Shown here: piece after piece, positions 3,301 to 58,900 of the stretch
Numbering within the stretch: the first letter of the stretch is position 1
Layout of the letters: each line of letters begins with the position of its first letter
Assembly (NCBI GenBank): GCA_964035545.1
Contig: OZ037768.1
Span: forward strand, 11,812,741-11,876,740
Direction of reading: 5' to 3'
Length of the DNA: 64,000 nt
DNA from: Bugula neritina
Lineage: Eukaryota; Animalia; Bryozoa
Notes under the pieces: generated by a model
Database searches by the model: none
Told to the model about the DNA's origin: nothing
Seen by the model: only the letters and a program-made list of their open reading frames with translations
Translations under genes and position numbers: made by a program

Positions 3301-6300
3301 ATACCAACTGGACCTGTTGGAACACATATTTTTCCTAAAAGTTGTTACCTTGAGTTATTACCTGCAACTGTCTGTAACTAGACTTTAAAACTATACCGCG
3401 ATACAAGTGGCAAGTTAGCATAATTCTAGCAGACAAATTATGCAGAATTTATAGCAAAGCACTGAACAAATTGGCTCATTTATTTCTATGATTAAATTAT
3501 TTTGCGCCCAGCCCATTGTTTCCTATGTTGGTATACACTAACATATATATAGACTAAACAACTCATTATTTCTCTCTACTTCTGAATCCGGCAGTTGGCC
3601 ATGTTTAAAGTTGGTTGTGCTTGCTATTTTTACATCAAAAAATCCTTTTTTATACGATTGCTTTAACCTAGCCAGTAGGGGATCAATGGTAGGGTCAACC
3701 ATCATTAGATTTTGACAATTCACTCTTCTGTTATTAGCTTGATCCTAACTTGAATATTCTTTAAAGGCAGGTACAACTGTTCTACCAACTCTGTTTCTAT
3801 TAGTTGCAAATTATTTCACAGTCTAGGCCCAAAGTGTGAGAATCTTCCAAACAGGTGGGGGGGGAGGTAAAGGAAGCTATCCATTATTTCACACAAGATA
3901 TTTGCTATACTTTTATTTGAATATATGTTTTGTCATTGCTTAGCTGAGCTTGGAGACTTTGACGAAGAAGACCACACTCCAGCTTTCATATCAGAGTTTC
4001 GGTTCATGCCTAATCAGTCGGAGGAAATGGAGCTTGAAATCTTCAACAAATACCAGTCATTAAGGTTAGACAATGCATAGGTTGTTGGGTGTGTGTGTGT
4101 GAGCGACAGCTGTAGGAGATAATCTGCCAGTTGCTGCCTTATCAGTGTGATGAGCTCCGTATAATGCTTTAAGTAAGGACACATTAATTGTAGCAGGTTC
4201 TTCGGTTCCCAATTTTAAAAAGAATTTTCTTCATGAATTGAGAAATTTAATCTCAAGCTGCTTCTAACAAATGACAGTTGATGACTGAAGCTAAGAACAG
4301 CGTTGCTGTACTACTTCTGTGAAGTATATTCTGTAAAAACAGTAAAAGACTCACAAGTTGCCCAATAAACTTTCTTTTTTAATATTTTTTTAAAAGCAAA
4401 TTAGATGAGCCATTTGCAAGATGCCAGTGAGTTTGGTTAATAAAAATCAGCTTTTCCAGTGACATATCTAATGCAATTGCACATGGTGTATTATCAGCAA
4501 ATAGAAATGACAATCAATACTCACAAATGTAAAATATTATTGATTATTTTGAAAACTAGAATATAGGTAGCAGGTAATTTTGTGGGAAGCTAGGACTAGT
4601 TGCTAATGCTGAGTATAGTGTCAGCATGATATTTAGCAGTTCTTCGGTGAAGTTCAGTTCATATACACCGCTGCCTTTCCTCCATTCTTCTGGTATTCAC
4701 TACTTGCACACGCAGAATATTCTACCCTCACAATACTCAACTCAAAAAACAGTGCCCTACAGATCCAGGTTTACAGAATTTCTATTTCTAAGTCATGAGT
4801 TGCTATGCTACTACTAACTGACTAATAACTAGTTCAATGGTGTCACACCTTACCACATATGGGTCGGTTGGCTGATCAGTTACATATATTTTCATTACCA
4901 ATTAGTTTGGGAAACTTTTTATCGTGAAATTATTCAATGACAAAAATTTATCAAATTGCCATTCTTATCACGTCGATAGAAATATGCAGTACATTGGTAT
5001 GACTCAAGAGATTGTACGACATATCTAGTAAACTCTGTGTTACTAAAGTGGAAGTACCAAGCACCAACTACATTTCCCTTTGAATAATGAATATTTGGTT
5101 CGTTTGATGCGCGATTCTAAAAATTGAAGCCCACAAAGCTGTGTAAATATTGAGCAGGGTGGTGACAGTGTACGACTATTGCTGCTTACAAATGTTTATT
5201 TTATATTTAGTTTATTAAATTTCCCAAAGGCTTGATTTTCTACCTTTTATTACAGATTTTTTACTAGGTTTGAAATTCTGAGTTAAATGCCCCCACACCT
5301 GGGCTCAGCTCAGGTGTGGCTGCTGTATCATGATATCAATGTAGAGGAGTTACTGAAGCAGTTGTCGGTACTGTTGAGGAAATAGTCACCATCTGGCAAA
5401 CACTTCTTTTTATCAGCTGTGATTAGAGATTTGTTGACTGCAATAATGTTCTCACTCACCAGTCTAGTAGTTTTATAACTTTAGAAGCTCATGGTAATGG
5501 TATTGTTATAACATGGGTACAGTTTGTGGCACGGGATTTTTCACAAAAAAAACTTTCATTGCTGTTGAAAAGTTTACCTAATTTCAGATCAACTATATTG
5601 GACCCTTCAAAGTTTATAAGTTTCCTTTACGATAAAACTAGAGCAAATCTCGTATATTTTTTTAGTTACCTGAGCATCTACTAAAATGTTGACATCACAT
5701 TTATTCCCAAGCCGCTTTTATCTTATTCTTATTAACAAATATTTGCTGGCACTTGATTACCCCCACCATTGAGTTATAAAGGCCGGGTTATACAGTATGC
5801 ATGGGATCATTGTGTTCAAGTTCTCTTCTTAGAGTGAGGTGATAAGATTGGCATACTTTTACCCCCACTATCATCTTTAGAGTCTGGTATCTAAGTAAAT
5901 TTACATCCTTATTTTTAGGCCAGCAGGTACTTTGCAAAAGTTTCACAAATTGACGGAGTTTTTTCACCATAAAGTTTGGTGTTGCTTGCTTTTCACTATT
6001 TTAGTCATTTCTTTTTTCTAGAACTAGCCTTCCCGGTGCCCTGTTATCACTGCAATGGCTGTGAATATTCCTTTCTGTCTCCATCTCATAACACTAAGTC
6101 CCTGCTAATTCTATAGCTTCCACCAAAAGTTCTGAAGCCTTAGCTACATTCTAATTTTTATAATAAGGTTAATGACCAATCATGATGCAGCAAGCTGCAT
6201 CCACAGTATCAGTCTTCAATCAGCTTGTTGTATTGTATCTTATTGTAATGTATTATATTACTATACAGCATTATACTATTGTATTGTCAACCCGTACTTG

Positions 6301-9300
6301 TATACATGTGTTACATCTTACAAGTGTCTCTCCTACTGCAGTATACTGCTTTGTCAATAACAAATATTGATTTTAAAATTCACAGTTCAATCTATTTTTC
6401 AACAACCATACCAGCTAAACGCTGTACTGTAACAGCTTAGTGTGAGCGTTTACAATGGTTATTTGATATAAATTTTTAGCTTGTAGAATTTAGACTGCAC
6501 AATCTTATGCTGTAATGTCCTGGGCCACAATCTAAACATTGAACCCAATCTTTGTAACAAGAACTTGTGTACATTTTAGTGGCCAAAGGATGACTCCAGA
6601 TAAGGCTGAGCTGCAGTACCTGTTGAAGGTGAAGCGACTAGACATGTATGGTGTGGACATGCACTACGTCCTGGTGTGTATTTCTTCCCCACAGGGATTG
6701 CTTGTTTACCCTGTAGCCTCAATTACATGTTACTTTTCAAACTTGCTCTCAGCTCTCTCTATGCTAAAACACAATGAAGTTTGCCAAAATTGTAATGTTC
6801 TGTATTTATCATAATTTTCAACCATTCCGTATTAGGTTTTGTTGTACTCAATTTAGCCTTTTGCTTTTGGTTCAAAAAGTACATCATGTAAATGTTTTGA
6901 GATGTTGTAATCTGTATGACTTTGCAGGGCCGTGATGGTCTTCCTTATAAACTGGGTCTGACTCCAACTGGGGTTCTGGTGTTCGAAGGAGAAGAAAAAA
7001 TAGGTCTATTTTACTGGTAAGTGTTGAGTTAAAGTATGTAACTTACAGACTGTGTCTATCTCTGCTGACCTTTCATTGGAAAGCAGCAAGTAAAAAGCCC
7101 ATCTGTTTTGTAATGTCAGCTAGGAGAGGTGCGAAGGAAGCATAATATTATATAAAAACATTAATTTCTTCTAAAAAAAACCCTGATTTTGTAAGGATAT
7201 TTAATCACTTCAGTAAGATGCTGTACCAGTCACAGACACCCGTAGTTTTTCATGAGCATTTAATCTTAGGTTAGGATTGTTACTGTGAGAATTGTATATT
7301 TGATATGCCAAAACTAACACAAAACCTATTTTTTTGTCTTCCACCATTTATTATCATTCTGTCTATCAAACTGCCTGTCCAACTAGCTAGAGTTTGACTG
7401 CTGGTGGTAGTGAAGTGTGGACATCTTTTGATCTCTCAGTAGTACTAGTAACTATGTGTATATTACTAGTTACTGAGGAGTAGTACTAGTTACTGAAGAG
7501 TAGTACTAGTAACTATGTGTATATTACTAGTTACTAAGGAGTAGTACTAGTTGCTAAGGAGTAGTACTAGTTGCTGAAGAGTAGTATTAGTTACTGAGTA
7601 TAGTACTAGTTACTGCTAAATAACAAAATACTCAGTCTTGTTCTTTTAGTCTATAAACTTAATATAAGACTGAAGTTGATCCGATAGATGGTAATTATGA
7701 GAATTCTCCAGGCACAGAGGTTTTAATATATTATTTGCTATCCGTAATTTATACAATTTGTTACTCAATTTTTACCCTAGGTAGCTATTCTCATGAGTTT
7801 GGCTGGTTAAGTATTGGGCATATTTTGTTGTCTATTCAGCAGGTTTCCTACCTCCATACAACGAGAGTTGGCTATCTACCTTCCTGTATTTCATAGCTGT
7901 TGGTGTTTCTAGCTGACTAGTTCATACTGACTGATAGTAGGCTAATAGAACTTATAATCTTAATATGACAGTTTCCCAGCAATCAACTGTTCCCCTCTAT
8001 TGTAATTAATAGGTGTACAGCTGTCATTGGATTAAGTTATTAGCTCCTTGACGGGTTAGTGTTTAATTTGCATCTCTGCTAGTAAAAATATACGGTTGAT
8101 ATGTTATATTTTCTTTGTTTTATCTTGTAAAAAGACGAATTGGAAGGTTTTGACTAAGTTATGTTAAGCTATTAGTACTTGAGTCCCTTTGACAACCAAG
8201 TGGTGTAATCTAGTGGGCTTGTAGAAAAGATGAAACTTGCATCAAGTTTGAGTAGGTCCTAGCTGAAAATCTCTAAAACAACTAAGCAGTTGTTATGAGG
8301 GGGGGGGGGGGTAATGATGTTTCAATTTCTATACAAATTGGTTTAGAATTGTAAGTCTATAGAAAAATTTTGAACAAAAATTTTTAAAGAAAACAGTTTG
8401 CTAATTCATTCTGTAGCCTATTATATACTGTTCATAATTTGCATATATGTAAATCATGAATAGTAATTATATTGCTGTTAATTTTGCTCATTTATTCTCA
8501 CTTGGTAGTGTGACTCAGTATGAAATTAGCAGCTTACCTGTTTTTCCATAACTGATATATACAATACACAATTCATGGTATTGACTAGGGATCTGTTACC
8601 TTTAGCTCATGGAAGTGACATATGATAATTACCTACTGGCACATATCTCAGACTTGGTGTAAGGGAACGAAAAAGAGTTTTAGCTGACTGCATAATAATG
8701 CAACTCTCTTAGGAGTTGAGATTTTTTGGTTCACCAGACTACACTATATTTCTTTTATTCCATTCGGCACCCTCACCACTGTACAACAACTGTACTTGAC
8801 TGAATCATCATGGACCTATTGTAATTTGCCTGTTCTCTTCTAATACTGATAGCTAACCACACTATGGTGCTCTTTTCCGTGCCTAAACAATAATTTGATC
8901 TTGAAATTCGAAATGCTCTTAAGTTTTTAGAAATAAAAGGTGCGGTTTCAGGTTTGTACTCTTGTTTGTAAGAGGCAGAATAATTGTTTAGAAAGAAGCT
9001 GCTGGACTTGCAGAGTGAGTCATTCGATCACATCATGTCGAAGTTACCTTACCTTGGTTAAAGACCAGTTTTATTGGAGTATTTATTAAATTGTTAGAAT
9101 CAAAGTGGCTGAAAATTATCTTGACTCTTCTAACAATCAGGTTTCTGGTAAATAACTCAGTAGCAGATTAACTTGGGGTACTTACTTAGTAGCCTAGAAT
9201 AACTATTATTTCCTATTTTAAACAAACTACTGGTAATTAATTTCTAGCAGTTGCAGGTAATAGCAGAACTCTACAGTGTGTGTTACTGTCACTTCAATGT

Positions 9301-15300: not shown

Positions 15301-18226
15301 CACACAGCTTGTCTCTCTCAATCATCTGCCATGCAATAGTTTCTCTACATAATCAAACATGTGATGATTTTATGACTGTGTGACTCACTAAATAAATTGT
15401 GCAGTAGTTGAGTAGTTGTCTGCCCTTAGAACTCATGCTATTACTTACGTTTGTAGAATTCAATGCTCCCTAAACCCCACTTTTAGCTGCAGTTTGTGTC
15501 ACCTTTTGTGTTATTTCTGTCACTAAATACGCTCAAACAATCAGTTTCTGTTAACTTTTTTCTTCCGAGTCTAACGCAGTATCTTTATTAATATTTCTTT
15601 TGTGTTCTTTCGCCATTTGCTAACAACTTATTATTTAAATTGACTGTGAAATTATTTGATACATGGTTGGTATGTTGTCAACCATTGCCCATGGATGTAT
15701 AACCAGTGTCTGTTGTACTTGTAGTCCTACCAGTCCCATCAACAGCCAACAGAAGGAACACTCATTCAACGGGTAAGTCCATCACTAAATGCCATGGTTA
15801 TATCAAATCTACTTCTACAGTTTCACTAGGCTACTCATTGGTCAGCTCACTCTGTAAGGCTGTCAGCTATTCACTGAAATGTTCTGTGTTTGATTTTAGA
15901 ACTCGGCTTCCGCGAAACAAATCTACCAGCAGCAGCCGATCTATCCCATCTCCCGTCAGTAATAAGGGCTATGCCAGTTTATCAAGGGTAGGTGTTAGTA
16001 TATACGTACATAGTATATACGTATATGGTATATATGTACATGGTATATACGTATATGGTATATACGTACATGGTATATACATACATGGTATATATGTACA
16101 TGGTATATACGTACATGGTATATACGTACATGGTATATACGTACATAGTATATACGTACATGGTATATACGTACATGGTATATATGTACATAGTATATAC
16201 GTACATGGTATATACATACATGGTACATATGTACATAGTATATATGTACATGGTATATAGTTTGCATGTCCTGAGTTATCAATGGTTAGATGTCATATTG
16301 GAGAAGTGTTGTCAAGTAGACAGAGAATAAAATGGTAAAGTTACCATTAGGAACATGAATATTGTGTTATACTCAGTCAACTAACATGTAAATCACAACT
16401 AAACTTCACATAAGGCCCTTGCATAACATGTTGGTTAATGTTTACAGGTTTCCACTCCGATCCATCGTACCCATCAGAAAACAGTGACTTATGTTTAGTC
16501 TAGTGTTTCCTACTCTAAATACATGTTAGCAATTAAGTACTCGTTGATTATACTTTAGAATGTGTAGTTTATTATTCAGTGTTTTACTTATGTTAGTTCC
16601 CATAGTTGAGAGTGTGTGTAGTGTTGCACAGACATATGTTTTGTTGTCCACAATAGCACCAAGCTCTATTCTTGAACTTTCCGAGCACCTAATTTAACTA
16701 AATAAGCTGTATTTTTATTGTTAACACAGGATAGAGGTGCCCAATCACCCAAGACTTCACAATTAGCCTCATTGCCTCGAGATTCTCCCATCAATTCTGG
16801 TGCTATGAGGTCTCCTATGACCACTAGCATCGGCTCTGCCGCATCTCATAGCCGCCTTGATACTGTCTCCACTAGTCACGAGTCTTTAGATCTTACCAAT
16901 ATACCACCAGAATGGTCTGCTTCTTCTGAGGTACCTCCGGTTTTGACCCCTGATGCTAACGCTAACACAAATCCATTCTTTGATAGCCCCGAGATTCGGG
17001 CGTTTCTCTTTGGTACATCGGATAGTATGCTTGGAGAGTTGCCAAGTGTTAGTACTGTTGCTAAGGGGAGCAGTACTGTTGCTAAGGGGAGCAGTAAGGT
17101 GCACTGTGCACCTAACAGCTCATCTCCCCAGCATAACCTTAATCTCCTCCTTCACTCCTCGCCTTCTGCACTTCTAGAATCTGTTGTTGATAGTCCAATG
17201 AGCATATCACCCGCTGGCAGTGTAGCACCTCTTGCCTCTTGTGAAGATGATGCGGATTTATGCTCTCCTGGAGTAAGTTAACATGACCCCCACCTGTTAG
17301 CCGCTGTCACTGAATGGCTGGCTGGCGCATGACCACTGGATGCTGTTAGCAATAACCTGCCACCCTCACTCTGCCGGGCCTATCATTGCATGGAGTTGGT
17401 ACATTTGCTACTGGTTGCTATCATACTTTTTGTTTCCTTGAGTTGCTGCATGACCACTTTCTTGCTATCTATCATACTTGTGCACAGTTATTGAGAAAAC
17501 AGATGGTTCGTCTCTGCGTAGCCGTGCCCTGCCTATTTTATTATGGTTCAGGCCTCCGCAGCAGCTGTGGTGTACTTATAACTATACTGTGTAATCAGTA
17601 GCTGCTTCTGCTGTGCATGCCCCCTCTATCCGTGGAAGCTTCTACGGTAGGCCAACTTCTATCGGCCCACACCGGTCTACTTACACATGACTGCCACTCT
17701 GTAAGACAAGAGAATTCATGCTTAATCTGTCATGAGTTGTGATCTTTGAGTTTCTTTGCCAACTCAGTGGAGTTTTTTGCTGTTGAAGTCATGCATGAAT
17801 CCTGACCAACCCGGTGTGCCTTTTATGATTTTAATGTTATATAATGAGCAGTTTTATCGTTTTATATTACTTGTGTGTAGTGTATATAATAACCACCACC
17901 TGTATTAATTTTCTATTTTAATTTCTTGAACTCAACTTATTTTATTTCAACAAAAATTTATAAATAGAATTATTGCTAGCAGATATTCGCTCCATTTTAA
18001 TCAAATTTGTCAACTAGTCGTAACAATAGAATTATATTTTATATTTCAAATAACAATTTGTGATGTATAAATTTAGGAAGCATCAGGTGAAGGATCTAGA
18101 TCGAAAAAGCATTTCACCAGCCGACAGGACTCGAAAACAAACGGAGACGTCTTTTCAGCCAACCCATTACCAACACCTGCACCCCGTAAATATGAAAAGA
18201 GAGTATGTGTGACTACGGAACTATGA
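400..18226 (+). CDS. EPB41L5: Band 4.1-like FERM + FERM-adjacent protein (EPB41L5/EPB41L4B/yurt orthologue), 5' end outside window
   Basis: Phase-consistent GT-AG exons: 400-442, 2062-2140, 2502-2602, 3944-4064, 6580-6673, 6928-7016, 10386-10502, 10832-10969, 11460-11618, 12431-12684, 13044-13232, (13877-~14074/14098), 14519-14573, 15209-15286, 15725-15772, 15900-15987, 16730-17272, 18077-18226. Translation includes [88 protein letters not shown] and [15 protein letters not shown]. It ends ...CVTTEL*, like the EPB41L5 C-terminus. Exon use in the C-terminal half is less certain. Confidence 0.92.
2718..2926. repeat. Degenerate tandem repeat built on the palindrome-rich core AGAGTAGTACTAGTA
   Basis: Repeated (a)gtagagtagtactagta units with ~90-bp higher-order duplication. 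A related array lies at 7437-7615. Confidence 0.8.
3735..3850 (-). mobile_element. Decayed 3' end of a CR1/L2-type LINE ORF2
   Basis: Minus strand reads [14 protein letters not shown], followed in a shifted frame by ...PAFKEY. This resembles the 'FS.RGPRLWN.LP...FK' C-terminal signature of L2/CR1 ORF2, with TGG mutated to TGA. Confidence 0.45.
7437..7615. repeat. Degenerate ~20-bp tandem repeat (AGTAGTACTAGTTACTGAGG-like)
   Basis: About 9 imperfect units sharing the AGTAGTACTAGT core with the 2718-2926 array. Confidence 0.8.
15998..16258. repeat. 15-bp minisatellite (GTACATGGTATATAC)n, ~17 copies
   Basis: Directly visible. It explains the spurious YVHGI/MVYTY/YIPCT ORFs. Confidence 0.95.
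16448..16498 (+). CDS. Candidate alternative terminal exon of the FERM gene ([16 protein letters not shown])
   Basis: Acceptor tttacag at 16441-16447. Phase 0 matches the donor after 15987. 16 sense codons, then TAG. Ends in a T-x-V class I PDZ-binding motif. Confidence 0.55.
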   Translation, partial: VSTPIHRTHQKTVTYV

Positions 18227-18988: not shown

Positions 18989-29014
<10,026 letters not shown>

Positions 29015-30198: not shown

Positions 30199-30549
30199 TG
30201 TTGTGAGTTTTAGCACAATTATCAAGCGTGGATTGCCTGCCTGCGTATTTAATGTCAATTTAACTAGTAATCACTAGTCTGGCTTGCGTACGATAACCTT
30301 TATTTAATTCGATAAACATAATTCTAACACCACATCAAACTATTATACAACACTGATCAATTATAAACACATGTTACTACTCCGAGTCCTTGCTCTCAAC
30401 AACACATGGTTTCTGCTGACTAACCCGCGAACAGTCACTTGACCGGAACCTTGCCTTCCGGTCTCTCTGATTGGATAGTAGAACATAGTTATAAGTATTC
30501 CCACGCAGGAGGGGACGAACCCATTATTATACTACGTAATCCCATTACA
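30199..30549 (-). repeat. 3' LTR
   Basis: Near-identical copy of 31657-32003, preceded on the minus strand by the PPT. Confidence 0.92.
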
Positions 30550-30835
30550 CCGCCCTTACTAGCAGAAAGCCCCACTTTCTGATGAAAACAAAACAGTAAA
30601 ATAATGTAAAAAAGTAAAGAAAACCCACAAAGAGAAAGAAGAGAAATATCAAATACATGTACGACATATGTATATAAGTAAGATAAACAGACGGCCAACA
30701 CACAGCTGGCCAGCTACAGAGAGAGAGAGAGAGAGAGATCTGGATCGTCACACAGATATTAGCAGATCAAGCATTTACACGATCACAATGTAGTACCCCG
30801 AGGATAGGCGGGGTGGAATTGTCAACTTCCAACTC

Positions 30836-31621
30836 CTAGTTTTGCAGGGACTGGATTCGGTGTCGTGCTTGCCGTGCACGTAGTCTACGCTTAAGGCGTC
30901 TTACTGAGCCCTTCAGTTCACTAAGGCCTATCGTAGTACTGAGTAAGTCGGGGGCCAGTTGAGTAAATTCATCCTGCAGTCGTAGGAGTCTTTCCTCGAC
31001 GGTTGCTAGTAGGTTAGGCCTGGTTGGAGCTGGTGTCGCTTCTTCTGGGGAATCTGATGCTTCCATGGGGGTGTTGTCTGGCAGGGGTATGATTGCAGCG
31101 ACAGTCTTTACCATGGGGGACTTCTGGCGGGCGGCTGTTAGCAGTGTGTAAAACCCGGAGGATAATGCGGCCCAGGTCAAAGCCTTCTTAACCACTGGTC
31201 TGACGGCTTCTAGATACTGGTCGTAATTGTCCGCGTCCACTACATAGCCTTCGCCTGTGAAACAGTCCATCATATGTGCCAAAACGGGGTATGGATAGAC
31301 GTCGTGAAACCCACACGGACAGAAGCGTAATAGGAAGTGTGCATTCACGTGCAGCTGTAGTCCTTGGTGTGAGGGGAGCTCTTCGTAACACACATGGCAG
31401 GTGTGTTGTGACCTACTTGGTCCCCAGGCTTCTTCAATTTGTCGCTCCGTCTGTCGCGACACCCATATGTGTCTTCGACGCAGCACCGCGGGCAGTCCGT
31501 TGTCCATTTCCGGTCCGTTATCCGAGGAGGAGAGGGGGAATAGATCCTGTGACCCGGAGTTGGTCAATCGAGTGTGATCTTCATTCCTCCGAATGGGTAG
31601 CTCTGTGCCTCTTTCTGTCAT
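30836..31621 (-). CDS. 261-aa LTR-element cargo protein with a C2H2 finger, a second CxC..H..C finger-like motif, and a C-terminal coiled coil/basic tail
   Basis: Intact, intronless, GC-rich ORF starting 16 nt after the PBS. Motifs: CHVC-x12-H-x3-H, then FCPCGF...AHMMDC. The C-terminus has a heptad pattern (VEERLLRLQDEFTQL...LSELKGSVRRLKRRLRARQARHR). Confidence 0.8.
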   Translation of the reverse strand: MTERGTELPIRRNEDHTRLTNSGSQDLFPLSSSDNGPEMDNGLPAVLRRRHIWVSRQTERQIEEAWGPSRSQHTCHVCYEELPSHQGLQLHVNAHFLLRFCPCGFHDVYPYPVLAHMMDCFTGEGYVVDADNYDQYLEAVRPVVKKALTWAALSSGFYTLLTAARQKSPMVKTVAAIIPLPDNTPMEASDSPEEATPAPTRPNLLATVEERLLRLQDEFTQLAPDLLSTTIGLSELKGSVRRLKRRLRARQARHRIQSLQN

Positions 31622-31637
31622 CTTGATATACGCAAAG

Positions 31638-31655
31638 ATCCCACCGCTGCCACCA
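31638..31655 (-). promoter_or_regulatory. Primer-binding site complementary to the tRNA-Leu 3' end
   Basis: Plus strand ATCCCACCGCTGCCACCA equals the 3'-terminal 18 nt of metazoan tRNA-Leu(AAG/TAG) including CCA. The minus strand reads TGGTGGCAGCGGTGGGAT. Confidence 0.9.
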
Positions 31656-31656
31656 C

Positions 31657-32003
31657 GGTTGTGAGTTTTAGCACAATTATCAAGCGTGGATTGCCTGCGT
31701 ATTTAATGTCAATTTAACTAGTAATCACTAGTCTGGCTTGCGTACGATAACCTTTATTTAATTCGATAAACATAATTCTAACACCACATCAAACTATTAT
31801 ACAACACTGATCAATTATAAACACATGTTACTACTCCGAGTCCTTGCTCTCAACAACACATGGTTTCTGCTGGCTAACCCGCGAACAGTCACTTGACCGG
31901 AACCTTGCCTTCCGGTCTCTCTGATTGGATAGTAGAACATAGTTATAAGTATTCCCACGCAGGAGGGGACGAACCCATTATTATACTACGTAATCCCATT
32001 ACA
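31657..32003 (-). repeat. 5' LTR
   Basis: Minus strand TGTAATGGG...CTCACAAC, containing a CCAAT box and AATAAA. The PBS follows immediately. Confidence 0.92.
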
Positions 32004-52948: not shown

Positions 52949-55900
52949 ATGAGTTCACGTCGATCTTCGTGCTGTAAGTAGTCTGTTTTTTTAAAAAATT
53001 GAGAAATTTATTTAAAATATATTCTAATGATATGTTCAATAGGCATATGGCATGTAGAAGTTTTACTTTAAGCTATAAATATCAATATGTTCTTCTAATC
53101 ACAAAGAATTAGCCTTTTGAATTACCATATCTCACTACAGCTGAAGTAAATGGAGTGGAACTGGTCCGTATACCTATTAACAACATGAATATAACTAAAG
53201 AAAAGGTAAAAGGTGGTGGACGAGGTCCTGTGATTAGTAGAGAGACATCTAAACCGTCTCGCGGAGGATCAACTCAGACCTCTGGCCGAACTACACCCGT
53301 GATGGCCAAACCTCCTAAGATGATGTCGGAAGCTGCCATTAAAGTAACAGCCAGCTTACGAGGCCACAACGACCAGTAAGCCAACCTCAAATGTTTAACT
53401 TTTAGATACTGTAATTGCACATATCTGACTTTGCATGACCTCAACAAGTTTTACTAGTTTTCTGACATCTTTTATTTTTTCAACTCGTGAGTTGCAAGGG
53501 TTTATTTTAAATACAACATATATTTGTTAATGTTAGACAGCTTTAATAGTTTGAAGATTTTACATAAATCATTCAGGCCTGTTTAAAGGGAGGTTATAAT
53601 GGTTTAATAGTACGTAAAGGACTGAGTGCAGCATATTGCTGTTGATGAGGTGTAGCATGCTGCTGCATCTCATCTATAGGGTTTCTAATCAATTAGGTGC
53701 AACCAGTTATGTCCGATTATCAAATAACTTGAATTCCCAAGTAATAACTAAGCTAACAGACCCAGTTTTAAACTAAGACTTGAAGCTAATTGAGAACTTT
53801 GATTTAGAAAATCACAGTCTAGACTTGCTCGGTCATTGTAGCTCAGCTCATACTAAGATCAATCAGCCACAGTAATAAAATAAGAAACACTGGATGAGAT
53901 TATTATCCTGCAGACTGCCTATTATCAAAATTAGTCTTTATGGAAATAGTAGTCTGATTAGTATAGTATTGCTAATTAGCTGCTGTTTCCATGTAGGCTG
54001 TGGCCTGACTATAATGATCTAATGTTGAGTCTCTATATATTTTATTATATTTAGCCTCAGAGAATCTCCTGATAGACTTAACTCTGTCTTCAATGCTGAA
54101 TATAATGTGTCACCTGTTCGGAACCACCCCTCTTCAGTTGCACAACCTCCAAGTCTGGTTGATGTACCTGCTACGGAAAGGTAATAGTAACAACTATCTT
54201 TCTTTGTATTCAATATAAGTAAATCAAGTCTAATTTGCATCAAGATAAACTAAATATTGCTTTGTTGCTGATTCCACTGCTGCAACCGATGACTTAAAGT
54301 GGCATGCATGTTGAATTGTATGATGGGCTAGCTACAACTATTGTGCTATATTATAATGCTACTATATAAGACCAGATATGTAGGATACAGGTATGCATTC
54401 TAGTTTCTCTTAACAGCTCACTGTGTTTGTGCACTAAAGAAGGGCGTGGCTTCTATTGTACTATCATCAGTCTACTGGTATTGTTGGAAATCTGGATTTA
54501 ATGAAATGTTTATATAGAGAACTCACAACTTGATATCAGTATGCTTTGTGTTTACAATAAGCTAAGCTACTTCTTTCTAATTGCTCTCCATTATAAAAAA
54601 GTGTCTAACAGCCCAATGATGTGCTACTTGAACACTAAGAAGAACTGATTGTTTTGTTTTTGAATCCAGTAAGCATAACCTCTTCAGTTAGGCTTGAGAA
54701 AACCATCTTCCTTTCTAAAGGAGTACTCTGCATATACATAATATTGTGATTTGAAGCATTGCAGAACGCTTGACTATTTTGTTTCGTTTATCATTACACA
54801 GTAACTACACTGTATACTCTATTCTCTCAGTAACTACACTGTATACTCTATTCTCTCAGTAACTACACTGTATACTCTACTCTCACAGTAACTACACTGT
54901 ATACTCTATTCTCTCAGTAACTACACTGTATACTCTATTCTCTCAGTAACTACACTGTATACTCTACTCTCACAGTAACTACACTGTACACTCTATTCTC
55001 TCAGTAACTACACTGTATACTCTACTCTCACAGTAACTACACTGTACACTCTATTCTCTCAGTAACTACACTGTATACTCTATTCTCTCAGTAACTACAC
55101 TGTATACTCTATTCTCTCAGTAACTACACTGTACACTCTACTCTCTCAGTAACTACACTGTATACTCTATTCTCACAGTAACTACACTGTATACTCTATT
55201 CTCTCAGTAACTACACTGTATACTCTATTCTCTCAGTAACTACACTGTACACTCTATTCTCTCAGTAACTACACTGTACACTCTATTCTCTCAGTAACTA
55301 CACTGTATACTCTACTCTCTCAGTAACTACACTGTATACTCTATTCTCTCAGTAACTACACTGTATACTCTATTCTCTCAGTAACTACACTGTACACTCT
55401 ACTCTCTCAGTAACTACACTGTATACTCTATTCTCACAGTAACTACACTGTATACTCTATTCTCTCAGTAACTACACTGTACACTCTATTCTCTCAGTAA
55501 CTACACTGTACACTCTATTCTCTCAGTAACTACACTGTACACTCTATTCTCTCAGTAACTACACTGTATACTCTACTCTCTCAGTAACTACACTGTATAC
55601 TCTACTCTCTCAGTAACTACACTGTATACTCTATTCTCACAGTAACTACACTGTATACTCTATTCTCTCAGTAACTACACTGTACACTCTATTCTCTCAG
55701 TAACTACACTGTACACTCTATTCTCTCAGTAACTACACTGTATACTCTATTCTCTCAGTAACTACACTGTATACTCTATTCTCTCATTAACTACACTGTA
55801 CACTCTACTCTCACAGTAACTACACTATATACTCTACTCTCTCAGTAACTACACTGTATACTCTATTCTCACAGTAACTACACTGTATACTCTATTCTCT

Positions 55901-58900
55901 CAGTAACTACACTGTACACTCTATTCTCTCAGTAACTACACTGTACACTCTATTCTCTCAGTAACTACACTGTATACTCTATTCTCTCAGTAACTACACT
56001 GTATACTCTATTCTCTCAGTAACTACACTGTATACTCTATTCTCTCAGTAACTACACTGTATACTCTATTCTCTCAGTAACTACACTGTATACTCTATTC
56101 TCTCAGTAACTACACTGTACACTCTATTCTCACAGTAACTACACTGTATACTCTTAACATAACTATAACTATATTCCCATTTTACATTTTCTAAACTTTC
56201 TACTGCTTAAGATTGTGAGGCTGGCCCAAATCTACCTGCATTTACTATTTTCATAAATATACTGTGGTTTCATAATGCATAAGGAGTTGCTTTCTCTTCT
56301 CATTCCTGTAATTTTGCATGGGCTTTGGGTGAGACTGAATAGCTTGCAGCTGCTCAACAGAAGCATGGAAACACCTCATGTTTATACTGAGTATATTTCT
56401 ACTACTTGCTGTGGGCTGTCCTTCTCGAATCAAAGCCGTTCTTGTGATGTTCATTTTTCATCATCACATTAAGCGCCATAAAACATTAATTACTAAGCTC
56501 TGGATTAGTATGAGCATTAATTTATTCATCTTCCTTAAGGTTAAGTTTAGCAAGTTTGTAAATTTGGTGAGTCTTGCATGTTCTTGTAACTATTTTATAC
56601 CACACAATGAAAAGTATTATAACACTACAGAGAGGTTTATAGTTCAGACTATACAGCTATTTTAAGAAGAGGTTAGGCTAGACAAGTCTTGGGTGTAATG
56701 ATCTGTCGAATATTCTTCTAGTAAATTCTCATGCCTCTAATGTGCATATTGGCACCTCTATATGTTGTGTCACAGAAACGGTCAAATTTGTTTTGAGTTT
56801 GCTTCACACGTATGTAGTATTTACAGCATAAAAGAGGAATGAGAATGATAAGGATTGTGGTTTCCAATTTAAAAGTTTTGATGACTCCCTAACCTGCTTG
56901 TATAATGTGTGGTTGGTTGTGAAGGGGTGGTGTAATATGCGAAGCAAGGAAAGCTATTGCATGTTGCAGCAGTGGCGAGTTTATATTGGTTGTAGAAGTG
57001 GTAATTGGAAAGATTCCTTTAAATGTATAATAATTCAAGTAGTATTCGTATGTACCACTGGATCAGTTGACCTACTTTCGTTTTTAGTTCTCCTGTGCAA
57101 GAGATTGAGGCTATGTCATCAAATACCCCTTCTATGACTGACACTTTCGGGCCTGCAACATCCAACACTAGCGATGTATCCCAGAAGTCTAGTTCGGATC
57201 TTCTGCAACATTCAAATGTCAATTATGTTGCTAATGGTAACTTTTTAGATTTGTGCAGTCTTGAAAGCGTTGTCTGTCGCGTTTTACTCAAAATTTTACA
57301 AAGTTTGCTTCACTTTTAAAATTCTTAAAAGGCAAAGGAAATAGTTTAATTATTTTCCAGGTCTGCAGATAACTTGTAGAAAGCATTACCAGCTATAAAC
57401 AGAATTGGTGTAGGTCTTTTGCTTTTTTAAAGCTGGCACTTTTTCATATTCAATATTCCTAAAAAAAGTCCAAGTTGTATTGCTGTTTCATTTGATTTTA
57501 TTTTAATATTAGAGTACTCATTCCTTCTATTTCCTAGGATAAAATATTGAAGTTAATGTAGCCATTTATATCTAGTGTCTATTATAACGCATCTTCCCAT
57601 ACATTTTATTTACATTCTATTGGGTTTTCAAGATCATAAGTTATACTGATCACTACGCTCATACAAACTGCAGCTACAAATTTATACATACTGATCTATT
57701 CCAAGCAATTGAAACGCAGTGAATGACAGGCAAATAGGTTATGTTGTTTGCTTAGATTGGCAGGGATGGAATTTTTCTAGGTTACTATTATGTGAGTTGG
57801 GCACAGTTATTCCCACAAGTATATTTACTATTTACCAGGTTATTCTGAGTCTCAGCTCATTGATCTGATGAAAAAGAATGCAGAGCTGGAGGGTCGCATA
57901 GAGATGTTGTCTGTTGAGTCAGAGACGGCCATTAAAGACAGAGCTAAATATCAGAGAGAGCTGGGAGCTCTAAAGTCTCAGCTCCTGGTAATATACTAGA
58001 TTAACTCTTACAATATAATAAATTAATTCATACAATATAGTAGATTTATTCAGACAATATATTAGATTAATACAGACAATGTAGTAGATTAATACATACA
58101 ATATAGTAGATTATTTCATCCAATATGGAAGATTAATTAAGATAATGTTGAAGAATAGTTCGGACAATATACTTCTAGTAGATAAATGTAGTCAATGTAG
58201 AAATGCAGAACTGTGGTAAGGCATTTATTTATATAACTAATAGAGCACTGCCTTGCATGTATTAATAGAGTTGTATCTTTTGTATTGACCCTTTGCTGTA
58301 TTATTTTATCTTATATATATGCAGGTTGATAATGACTTTTAACACTTTCACTGTGTTGCCTGCTTATTTTATTTTTAAGAGTTACGCTGTTCTATTTATT
58401 CATTATTGGCTTTCTTAGTTGTTTGAAAGAAATGCATCGGCGTCACAGCCCGATACTCAAAAGGAGAGTATGAAAACGCAGCAGTTGGCTGATGACCTTA
58501 AAAGACAAGTAGCCGACTTACAGAAACAGTTGACAACCAAAACAACAGAAACTGTTAGATTAAATGAGAATCTACATAACACACAGGTCTGTGATTTGTT
58601 GAATATACTATGTAACTACCACCATGAATAAACTAACACAATGTATTTATCTTTATGTGACTAAACTTGGGTGAATTGATGAGTGGAACCATTTGTATGA
58701 AATTAAATTTTAGTGTACCATGCACTGCTATGCTAACTATATACTGATTGTGTAACATTAAATATATGGGGATATTAAAGGAGCTGAATGCTAAGCTGCA
58801 AGCAACCATCACCTCGTTTGGGCAGCAAATTAAGGACAAGGATTTGGAGCTCTTCAATGTTGGTAATAACCTCCGAACTCTCGAACTTCAAGTCGGCAGC

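Follow-up and report, generated by a model that had tools for sequence, protein, structure and literature searches.

A 1.8-kb long terminal repeat element in the bryozoan Bugula neritina is very likely a copy of the spliced accessory-gene mRNA of a larger Ty3/gypsy-type retrotransposon

A 1.8-kb long terminal repeat (LTR) element lacking gag and pol lies on the minus strand at 30199–32003 of a 64,000-nt stretch of Bugula neritina DNA (contig OZ037768.1, positions 11,812,741–11,876,740 of assembly GCA_964035545.1). This whole stretch is called the window below. The element encodes one intact open reading frame (ORF) of 261 amino acids. Comparison with related loci makes it very likely that the element arose from a larger bryozoan Ty3/gypsy-type retrotransposon, as a cDNA copy of its spliced subgenomic mRNA for the accessory gene.

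The features listed in a preliminary description of the element, made from the letters of the window, are all present on the minus strand: LTRs of ~350 bp with three differences, a perfect 18-nt tRNA-Leu primer-binding site (PBS), a polypurine tract (PPT) and a single 261-amino-acid ORF. The 5′ LTR (31657–32003, 347 nt) runs from TGTAATGGG to CACAACC and has an AATAAA at 31753–31758. The 3′ LTR (30199–30549, 351 nt) runs from TGTAATGGG to CACAACA and has an AATAAA at 30299–30304. The LTRs are direct repeats with TG...CA ends, as in Ty3/gypsy-type elements, and are 99% identical, with one internal substitution, a 4-bp GCAG indel and the terminal base as the differences. The PBS (TGGTGGCAGCGGTGGGAT, 31638–31655) begins 1 nt past the 5′ LTR and is complementary at 18/18 positions to the 3′ end of tRNA-Leu(AAG/TAG), as judged from a published tRNA-Leu fragment. 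The plus strand at this site reads ATCCCACCGCTGCCACCA, identical to the tRNA-Leu(AAG/TAG) 3′ fragment printed in PMC10591036. Rfam and tRNA scans of the 64-kb window gave no match, and ARAGORN found no host tRNA-Leu on ten related loci. A polypurine-tract-like sequence, AGTAAGGGCGG (30550–30560), adjoins the upstream side of the 3′ LTR; it is 11 nt long and purine-rich, with two pyrimidines included. The element thus has both the PBS and the PPT of an LTR retrotransposon and retains what reverse transcription requires in cis (R-U5-PBS and PPT-U3-R). The ORF (30836–31621, 786 nt) occupies 71% of the 1107-nt interior and is read here as a 14-codon gag leader in frame with a gene termed ORF3. The flanks, read as a 4-bp target-site duplication, are CTGG and CTTG (3/4 match), and a 5-bp reading matches at 3/5 positions. 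The related element L001 is flanked by ATAA and ATAA, a target-site duplication.

Unspliced comparison loci were contigs from Bugula neritina samples that carry elements of 5.3–5.5 kb. The gene order of these elements is LTR, PBS, gag (CCHC), protease, integrase zinc domain, ORF3, LTR. Comparison with these contigs shows the window element to be a 5.3–5.5-kb element minus 3.6 kb. BLASTN against L001 gave two blocks: one, at L001 3896–4252, takes in the LTR, the PBS and the opening 43 nt of the ORF, and the other, at L001 7854–9238, begins with ORF codon 15 and extends through the 3′ LTR. The coding part of the first block (31579–31621) comprises the gag ATG, 13 more codons and the first base of codon 15, and aligns to the gag start of unspliced L001, L003 and L008 as far as the donor site. 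With a slash marking the break, the left break reads AATGAAG/GTAAGG in L001, AATGAAA/GTGAGG in L003 and AATGAAG/GTGAGG in L008, and the right break reads ctctttcag/ATCACACT or ctcttgcag/ATCACACT in six independent unspliced loci. The consensus is donor AAG/GTRAGG and acceptor CTCTTYCAG/AT. In the window the two sides meet at 31578–31579 as AATGAAG/ATCACACT, the site where 3.6 kb of gag-pol is missing. The ends of the gap coincide exactly with the donor and acceptor of the parent elements, the pattern of a retroelement made from spliced RNA. In the unspliced loci the interval codes for Gag with a CCHC knuckle, for an aspartyl protease and for an integrase H2C2 domain. By its boundaries, the missing 3.6 kb appears to be a canonical GT..AG intron. 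Because the missing piece is bounded exactly by GT..AG splice sites, the 261-amino-acid ORF can be read as ORF3 joined in frame, by splicing, to 14 gag codons. The junction GAATGAAG/ATCACACTCGATTGAC is identical in the window copy and in a second spliced copy, L005, and the reading frame from the gag ATG is intact across every junction compared.

The L001 element spans 3861–9246, with LTRs at ~3861–4175 and 8898–9246, and encodes gag, an aspartyl protease, an integrase H2C2 domain and, last, ORF3. L003 (5401–10472), L006 and L008 (382–5850) are colinear with it. Pfam identified the protease and Integrase_H2C2 in all four, and a CCHC knuckle was scored in the L003 gag. No RVT match and no rve match were found by Pfam on the 5.3–5.5-kb elements. 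Their 522-amino-acid pol ORF is ~65% identical to L013 on either side of the RVT_1 block, and they skip, in frame, ~850 nt that carry RVT_1 in L013; this gap is not at splice sites. The 5.3–5.5-kb relatives form a non-autonomous tier that lacks reverse transcriptase (RT) and keeps long ORFs. L013 itself encodes an Asp protease, RVT_1, rve and SH3_Tf2-1 in gypsy order, followed 3′ by a distant ORF3 homologue. The Ty3/gypsy order of pol domains is found in the relatives only, the window copy having no pol. L010 is a 7.3-kb LTR element with RT_RNaseH fragments and an ORF3 homologue at its 3′ end. The PBS of the window element is also present in L001, L003 and L008, and with one mismatch in L005 and L010. 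Purine-rich tracts homologous to that of the window lie at the same place in L001, L005 and L008. By gene order and homology, ORF3 is a standing 3′ accessory gene of a Ty3/gypsy-type lineage of 5.3–7.3-kb gag-pol elements. The lineage has three tiers: a form with RT, a 5.3-kb form without it and a 1.8-kb spliced form, of which the window copy is the smallest.

Several other features were recorded on these contigs. At L013:1593–2216 (minus strand), upstream of the L013 element, a pol segment (amino acids 315–522 of the L003 pol) is duplicated in inverted orientation, which indicates a rearranged or nested copy. A PPT-like internal sequence, TAAGGGCAATGG/TGTAATGGG, precedes the 5′ LTR of L008 (L008:364–400) and suggests either tandem elements with a common LTR or an assembly artefact. 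A 117-bp tandem repeat in 6 copies lies inside a 384-amino-acid ORF just downstream of the L001 element (L001:10465–11349). A 330-amino-acid ORF just past the L010 element looked like a tandem ORF3 and proved to be unrelated.

A word-indexed protein search returned 100 relatives of the ORF at E < 1e-15, nearly all from Joint Genome Institute (JGI) samples 3300002729 and 3300003318. Contigs of these samples bear the tag AY690838, an accession that a paper on the complete B. neritina mitochondrial genome cites (PMC2678162). Related-locus scans of metagenome and viral contigs and an exact junction-pattern scan of metagenome contigs gave no relative, so copy counts rest on contigs that encode related proteins and on called proteins, a small metagenome-contig sample. 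One of the 100 called relatives (P0001, which is L005) has the exon-1/exon-2 junction peptide, and 21 read through the 3′ end of the intron. The remaining 78 start too far downstream to be classified as spliced or unspliced, and the ratio of spliced to unspliced among decidable genes is 1:21. L005 has ~83–85% nucleotide identity and 81% protein identity to the window copy. The nearest nucleotide relatives of the window copy are L014 (86%), L016 and L006, all unspliced. In a maximum-likelihood tree of ORF3 plus the 3′ untranslated region, the window copy and L005 are not sister. The PBS of L005 (L005:700–912) is preceded by only the last ~8 nt of a recognisable 5′ LTR, and the sequence upstream of it is unlike the element's own 3′ LTR.

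These counts bear on the proposal of the preliminary description, a self-propagating family of gag/pol-less mini-elements, comparable to TRIM/LARD, that has evolved to carry a zinc-finger regulator as cargo. The LTRs, PBS, PPT and ORF are all intact, so re-transcription and re-mobilization are possible, a second spliced copy exists, and the murine leukaemia virus (MLV) element SDARE is reported as a case in which a spliced-RNA retroelement persists (PMC10496198). However, the ratio of spliced to unspliced is just 1 to 21 among decidable related genes, the window copy has its nearest kin among unspliced loci, it does not pair with L005 in the tree, and full-length elements carry the ORF as a standard component. 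A separate family is accordingly unlikely, and the gene that it was thought to spread is the ordinary ORF3 of 5.3–7.3-kb gag-pol elements. Many 1.8-kb copies with dN/dS <1 would, by that description, have supported such a family; one further spliced copy was found in the sample, dN/dS over ORF3 is <1, and the window has only one copy. Because they are rare and non-sister, spliced copies look, in this sample, like occasional, recurrent by-products with no lineage of their own.

Internally deleted LTR elements are common, and the 5.3-kb relatives themselves show in-frame loss of the RT block away from splice sites. An ordinary internal deletion, at the DNA level or by template switching in reverse transcription and unrelated to splicing, would place the window element among them. 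Yet both of its breaks fall exactly on a donor (AAG/GTRAGG) and an acceptor (polypyrimidine-CAG/) that are present in every unspliced relative, the junction is the same in two diverged, non-sister copies, the frame is kept, and the junction is explicable without microhomology. Such a deletion is highly improbable here. The fallback of the preliminary description, an ordinary deletion derivative, is right in that the element has lost sequence and wrong in that the loss is ordinary or random, the missing part corresponding to an exact splicing event.

The conserved core of the ORF3 protein, a double zinc finger, spans amino acids 36–170 (31112–31516, minus strand), and its ligands are conserved in three alignments. 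The first zinc motif is C75-x2-C78-x12-H91-x3-H95 and the second is C101-x-C103...H116-x3-C120. Among relatives as distant as ~25% identity, C78, H91, H95, C101 and C103 are invariant and C75, H116 and C120 nearly so. The conserved ligands fit two zinc sites, a putative C2H2 and a putative CxC-H-C. The C2H2 finger and the CPC..H..C motif noted in the preliminary description are both present. A C-terminal long helix, predicted by AlphaFold2, covers amino acids 204–260 (30842–31012, minus strand) and is a candidate leucine-heptad coiled coil; it ends in an arginine-rich tail, RRLKRRLRARQARHR (amino acids 241–255; 30857–30901, minus strand). The C-terminus is the most conserved part in the close family, with the heptad-like leucine helix, a QLAPDLLSTT.GL motif and the tail RRLKRRLRARQARHR.

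The full-length protein was modelled in AlphaFold2 from a shallow alignment with a predicted local distance difference test score (pLDDT) of 50, and a domain run with diverse homologues was used in its place. The full-length model supports only the helix at 204–260, with block-mean pLDDT of 61–92, highest at the C-terminal end. The domain run (amino acids 36–170, diverse homologue alignment) gave a pLDDT of 92.7 and a predicted template modelling (TM) score of 0.85. Foldseek against the PDB gave nothing significant, the best match being a tandem C2H2 finger (E 2.1, TM ~0.3). Foldseek against BFVD likewise gave nothing significant, with a RING-type finger best (E 0.57) and C2H2 proteins among the next weak matches. 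A PDB sequence search with the family profile found no match below E 0.39. Pfam C2H2 matches on the ORF are sub-threshold (E 0.3–9, 7–11 bits against cut-offs of 25–27). The classical C2H2 spacing is present and the ligands are near-invariant, and the Foldseek likeness to Kaiso/BCL11A fingers is weak (E ~2–5, TM 0.3). Pfam found no capsid, knuckle, protease, RT, RNase H or integrase in the ORF. No signal peptide or transmembrane segment was found in it, and the maximum 19-residue hydropathy is 0.97.

Pairwise dN/dS over ORF3 (Nei-Gojobori) is 0.14–0.56, with a median of ~0.2 and dS from 0.12 to >1. ORF3 is under purifying selection. Stops and frameshifts are absent from ORF3 in four of the eight relatives compared, and the other four have 1–2 small defects. 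An exhaustive HMMER search with no length window found 79 relatives, including longer proteins and some with two cores. Two double-zinc-finger cores occur in one protein in the distant homologues P0108 (Watersipora subatra XP_067940964.1), P0163 and P0169. The B. neritina GenBank genome annotates members of the family only as hypothetical proteins, and more distant ones occur in Watersipora subatra. ORF3 is a conserved accessory protein with, on the structure prediction, a compact two-zinc domain, a coiled-coil helix and an arginine-rich tail. It appears to represent a previously undescribed accessory gene family whose predicted domain is unlike any PDB or BFVD structure.

A highly divergent Gag or Env, structural rather than regulatory, would fit an ORF that begins at the gag ATG and sits at the env position of full-length elements, but is extremely improbable, since the parents encode Gag, with its CCHC knuckle, in a gene of its own, gag contributes just 14 codons, Pfam and PDB sequence searches are empty, neither a capsid nor an envelope fold is matched by the confident domain model (best Foldseek E 2.1 in PDB and 0.57 in BFVD), and a signal peptide and transmembrane segment are absent. 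The lack of a signal peptide or hydrophobic segment argues against an Env, and the lack of a capsid-like match argues against a Gag. The preliminary description had already taken the ORF to be neither a replication enzyme nor a Gag and to be free of Gag and Pol domains, and Pfam finds neither kind. The divergent Gag that it named as a possible counter-finding did not appear, the confident domain model giving no capsid-like fold in Foldseek. Its zinc-finger/coiled-coil ORF, here conserved and under purifying selection (dN/dS ~0.2), and its view of the element as non-autonomous and mobilized in trans also agree with the present results.

The origin of the window element as a cDNA copy of a spliced mRNA can be laid out in steps. 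A full-length form would be transcribed from the 5′ LTR to the 3′ LTR. Comparison of genomic copies places the donor 43 nt into gag and the acceptor at the start of ORF3, and splicing between them would drop all of gag-pol. The spliced RNA would still begin with R-U5-PBS and end with PPT-U3-R. Because it retains these signals, Gag and Pol supplied in trans could package it, prime it with tRNA-Leu, reverse transcribe it and integrate it, as the anatomy of the element suggests. Reverse transcription would regenerate two near-identical LTRs, and the product would be an intronless ORF3 cassette driven by an LTR. In the small sample compared, such copies appear to arise repeatedly, as by-products.

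A number of points weigh against this origin. The direct parent was not found, and the nearest sampled relative is only ~86% identical. Just two spliced copies were seen, and the branch support for their separation is moderate (76–95). The splice event itself is inferred from DNA copies alone. The 5.3-kb relatives have no detectable RT or integrase core, so mobilization needs a third party, tentatively an L013-like one. The target-site duplication of the window copy is unclean, so ordinary integrase-mediated insertion is only putative for that copy. For the role of ORF3, the argument is from motif content and analogy, and the protein has no sequence or fold likeness to Rev, solved structures or BFVD models.

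If copied in this way, the window element is evidence from a natural germline that an invertebrate LTR retrotransposon can carry a spliced subgenomic RNA through the whole retrotransposition cycle. The window copy also marks the splice sites of its parent without RNA data, and the three tiers offer a compact system for studying trans-mobilization.

Elsewhere in the window, a 29-bp minisatellite of ~47 copies with 95% matches occupies 54799–56154 and coincides with a strong local GC skew of −0.39. A 355-amino-acid ORF at 18989–20056 on the minus strand lies on 63-, 93- and 156-bp tandem repeats (19067–19551) and has no Pfam match; it could be a coding exon of repetitive sequence or a reading frame open by chance within a repeat. 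Simple repeats occur at 21991–22365, an AC-rich array with a 10-bp period over ~375 bp, and at 15998–16259, a 15-bp repeat in 17.5 copies.

An element with a 3.6-kb intron in its genomic RNA must export that RNA unspliced from the nucleus. Rev, Rex, Rem and Rec are small proteins made from spliced mRNAs, with an arginine-rich tail and an oligomerization region. ORF3 shares the spliced mRNA, the arginine-rich tail and, by prediction, the oligomerization region, and such a protein is logically needed where genomic RNA has a large intron. The pattern of this class, a product of a spliced mRNA beside genomic RNA that retains the intron, can be read for ORF3 from the genomic cDNA copy and the splice-site consensus. 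ORF3 shows no homology to these proteins, Foldseek against PDB and BFVD having given no match. We know of no zinc fingers in Rev, Rex, Rem or Rec, and ORF3 has them. A second comparison is with CERV of the Caenorhabditis elegans Ty3/gypsy element Cer1, which is a spliced-mRNA product encoded at the env position as part of a larger protein (PMC10309623). CERV has a cysteine-rich putative zinc site, multimerizes, has no homologues beyond its host clade, and is required for export of unspliced genomic RNA (PMC10309623). ORF3 resembles it in spliced-mRNA expression logic, 3′/env position and a putative zinc site. The putative zinc site of CERV is a C4 loop in a ring-forming domain, whereas ORF3 would have C2H2 and CxC-H-C fingers and a coiled coil. 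The two are likened by expression logic and motifs, and no sequence relationship was seen or compared.

ORF3 has the same expression logic and similar ingredients as the retroviral proteins and CERV, and for this reason a regulator that oligomerizes, binds nucleic acid and acts on the RNA or promoter of the element itself is ranked as its likeliest role, which by analogy is proposed only tentatively. A wider proposal is more doubtful still. This bryozoan Ty3/gypsy lineage might be complex in the retroviral sense, with a zinc-finger, coiled-coil, arginine-rich protein of new fold, made from a spliced mRNA, controlling the intron-containing genomic RNA or the LTR promoter. Spliced retrocopies would then be stand-alone intronless suppliers of the protein, maybe modulators, and possible material for domestication. 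If ORF3 is Rev/CERV-like, it would add a further independent example of post-transcriptional control in the retroviral manner outside vertebrates.

Extra lineage-specific ORFs 3′ of pol are described in Ty3/gypsy elements of bdelloid rotifers (PMC5408684) and plants (PMC7264820). ORF3 likewise lies 3′ of pol and is lineage-specific. To our knowledge, the ORF3 types described from rotifers and plants (env-like, hydrolase-like and others) do not include this zinc-finger/coiled-coil family.

TRIM and LARD elements have non-coding interiors and propagate as families in their own right. The window element is like them in being a short LTR element without gag-pol that has a PBS and PPT and is probably mobilized in trans. 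It differs in having a selected 261-amino-acid ORF (dN/dS ~0.2) and a coding parent, in its apparent derivation by splicing, and in its rarity. Neither a non-coding interior nor, in the metagenome-contig sample, propagation as its own family was found for it.

The closest mechanistic precedent is the SD′ RNA of MLV and the element SDARE. The SDARE splice reportedly joins a site inside gag to the end of pol, which yields a Gag-integrase fusion. The window element differs in that the whole of gag-pol is removed and the protein is the distinct ORF3. MLV SD′ RNA is reported to be co-packaged, and SDARE is transcribed directly, gives more SD′ RNA and encodes the P50 accessory protein (PMC2925334, PMC10496198). 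The likeness is that a spliced subgenomic RNA keeps its packaging and reverse-transcription signals (PMC2925334, PMC10496198), and is packaged, reverse transcribed and integrated as a shorter LTR-flanked unit. The unit encodes an accessory protein with Gag residues at its start, and SDARE itself is directly transcribed. SDARE is experimentally defined and belongs to an exogenous mammalian gammaretrovirus, whereas the present element is a germline genomic copy from an invertebrate Ty3/gypsy-type element, read from DNA. Subgenomic RNAs made by splicing are known for copia, Bagy2, Ogre and CRR, and the general expectation is that retrotransposons must avoid packaging spliced RNA (PMC3735527). By its splice-bounded gap and intact cis signals, the window element appears to be a natural invertebrate exception to that avoidance.

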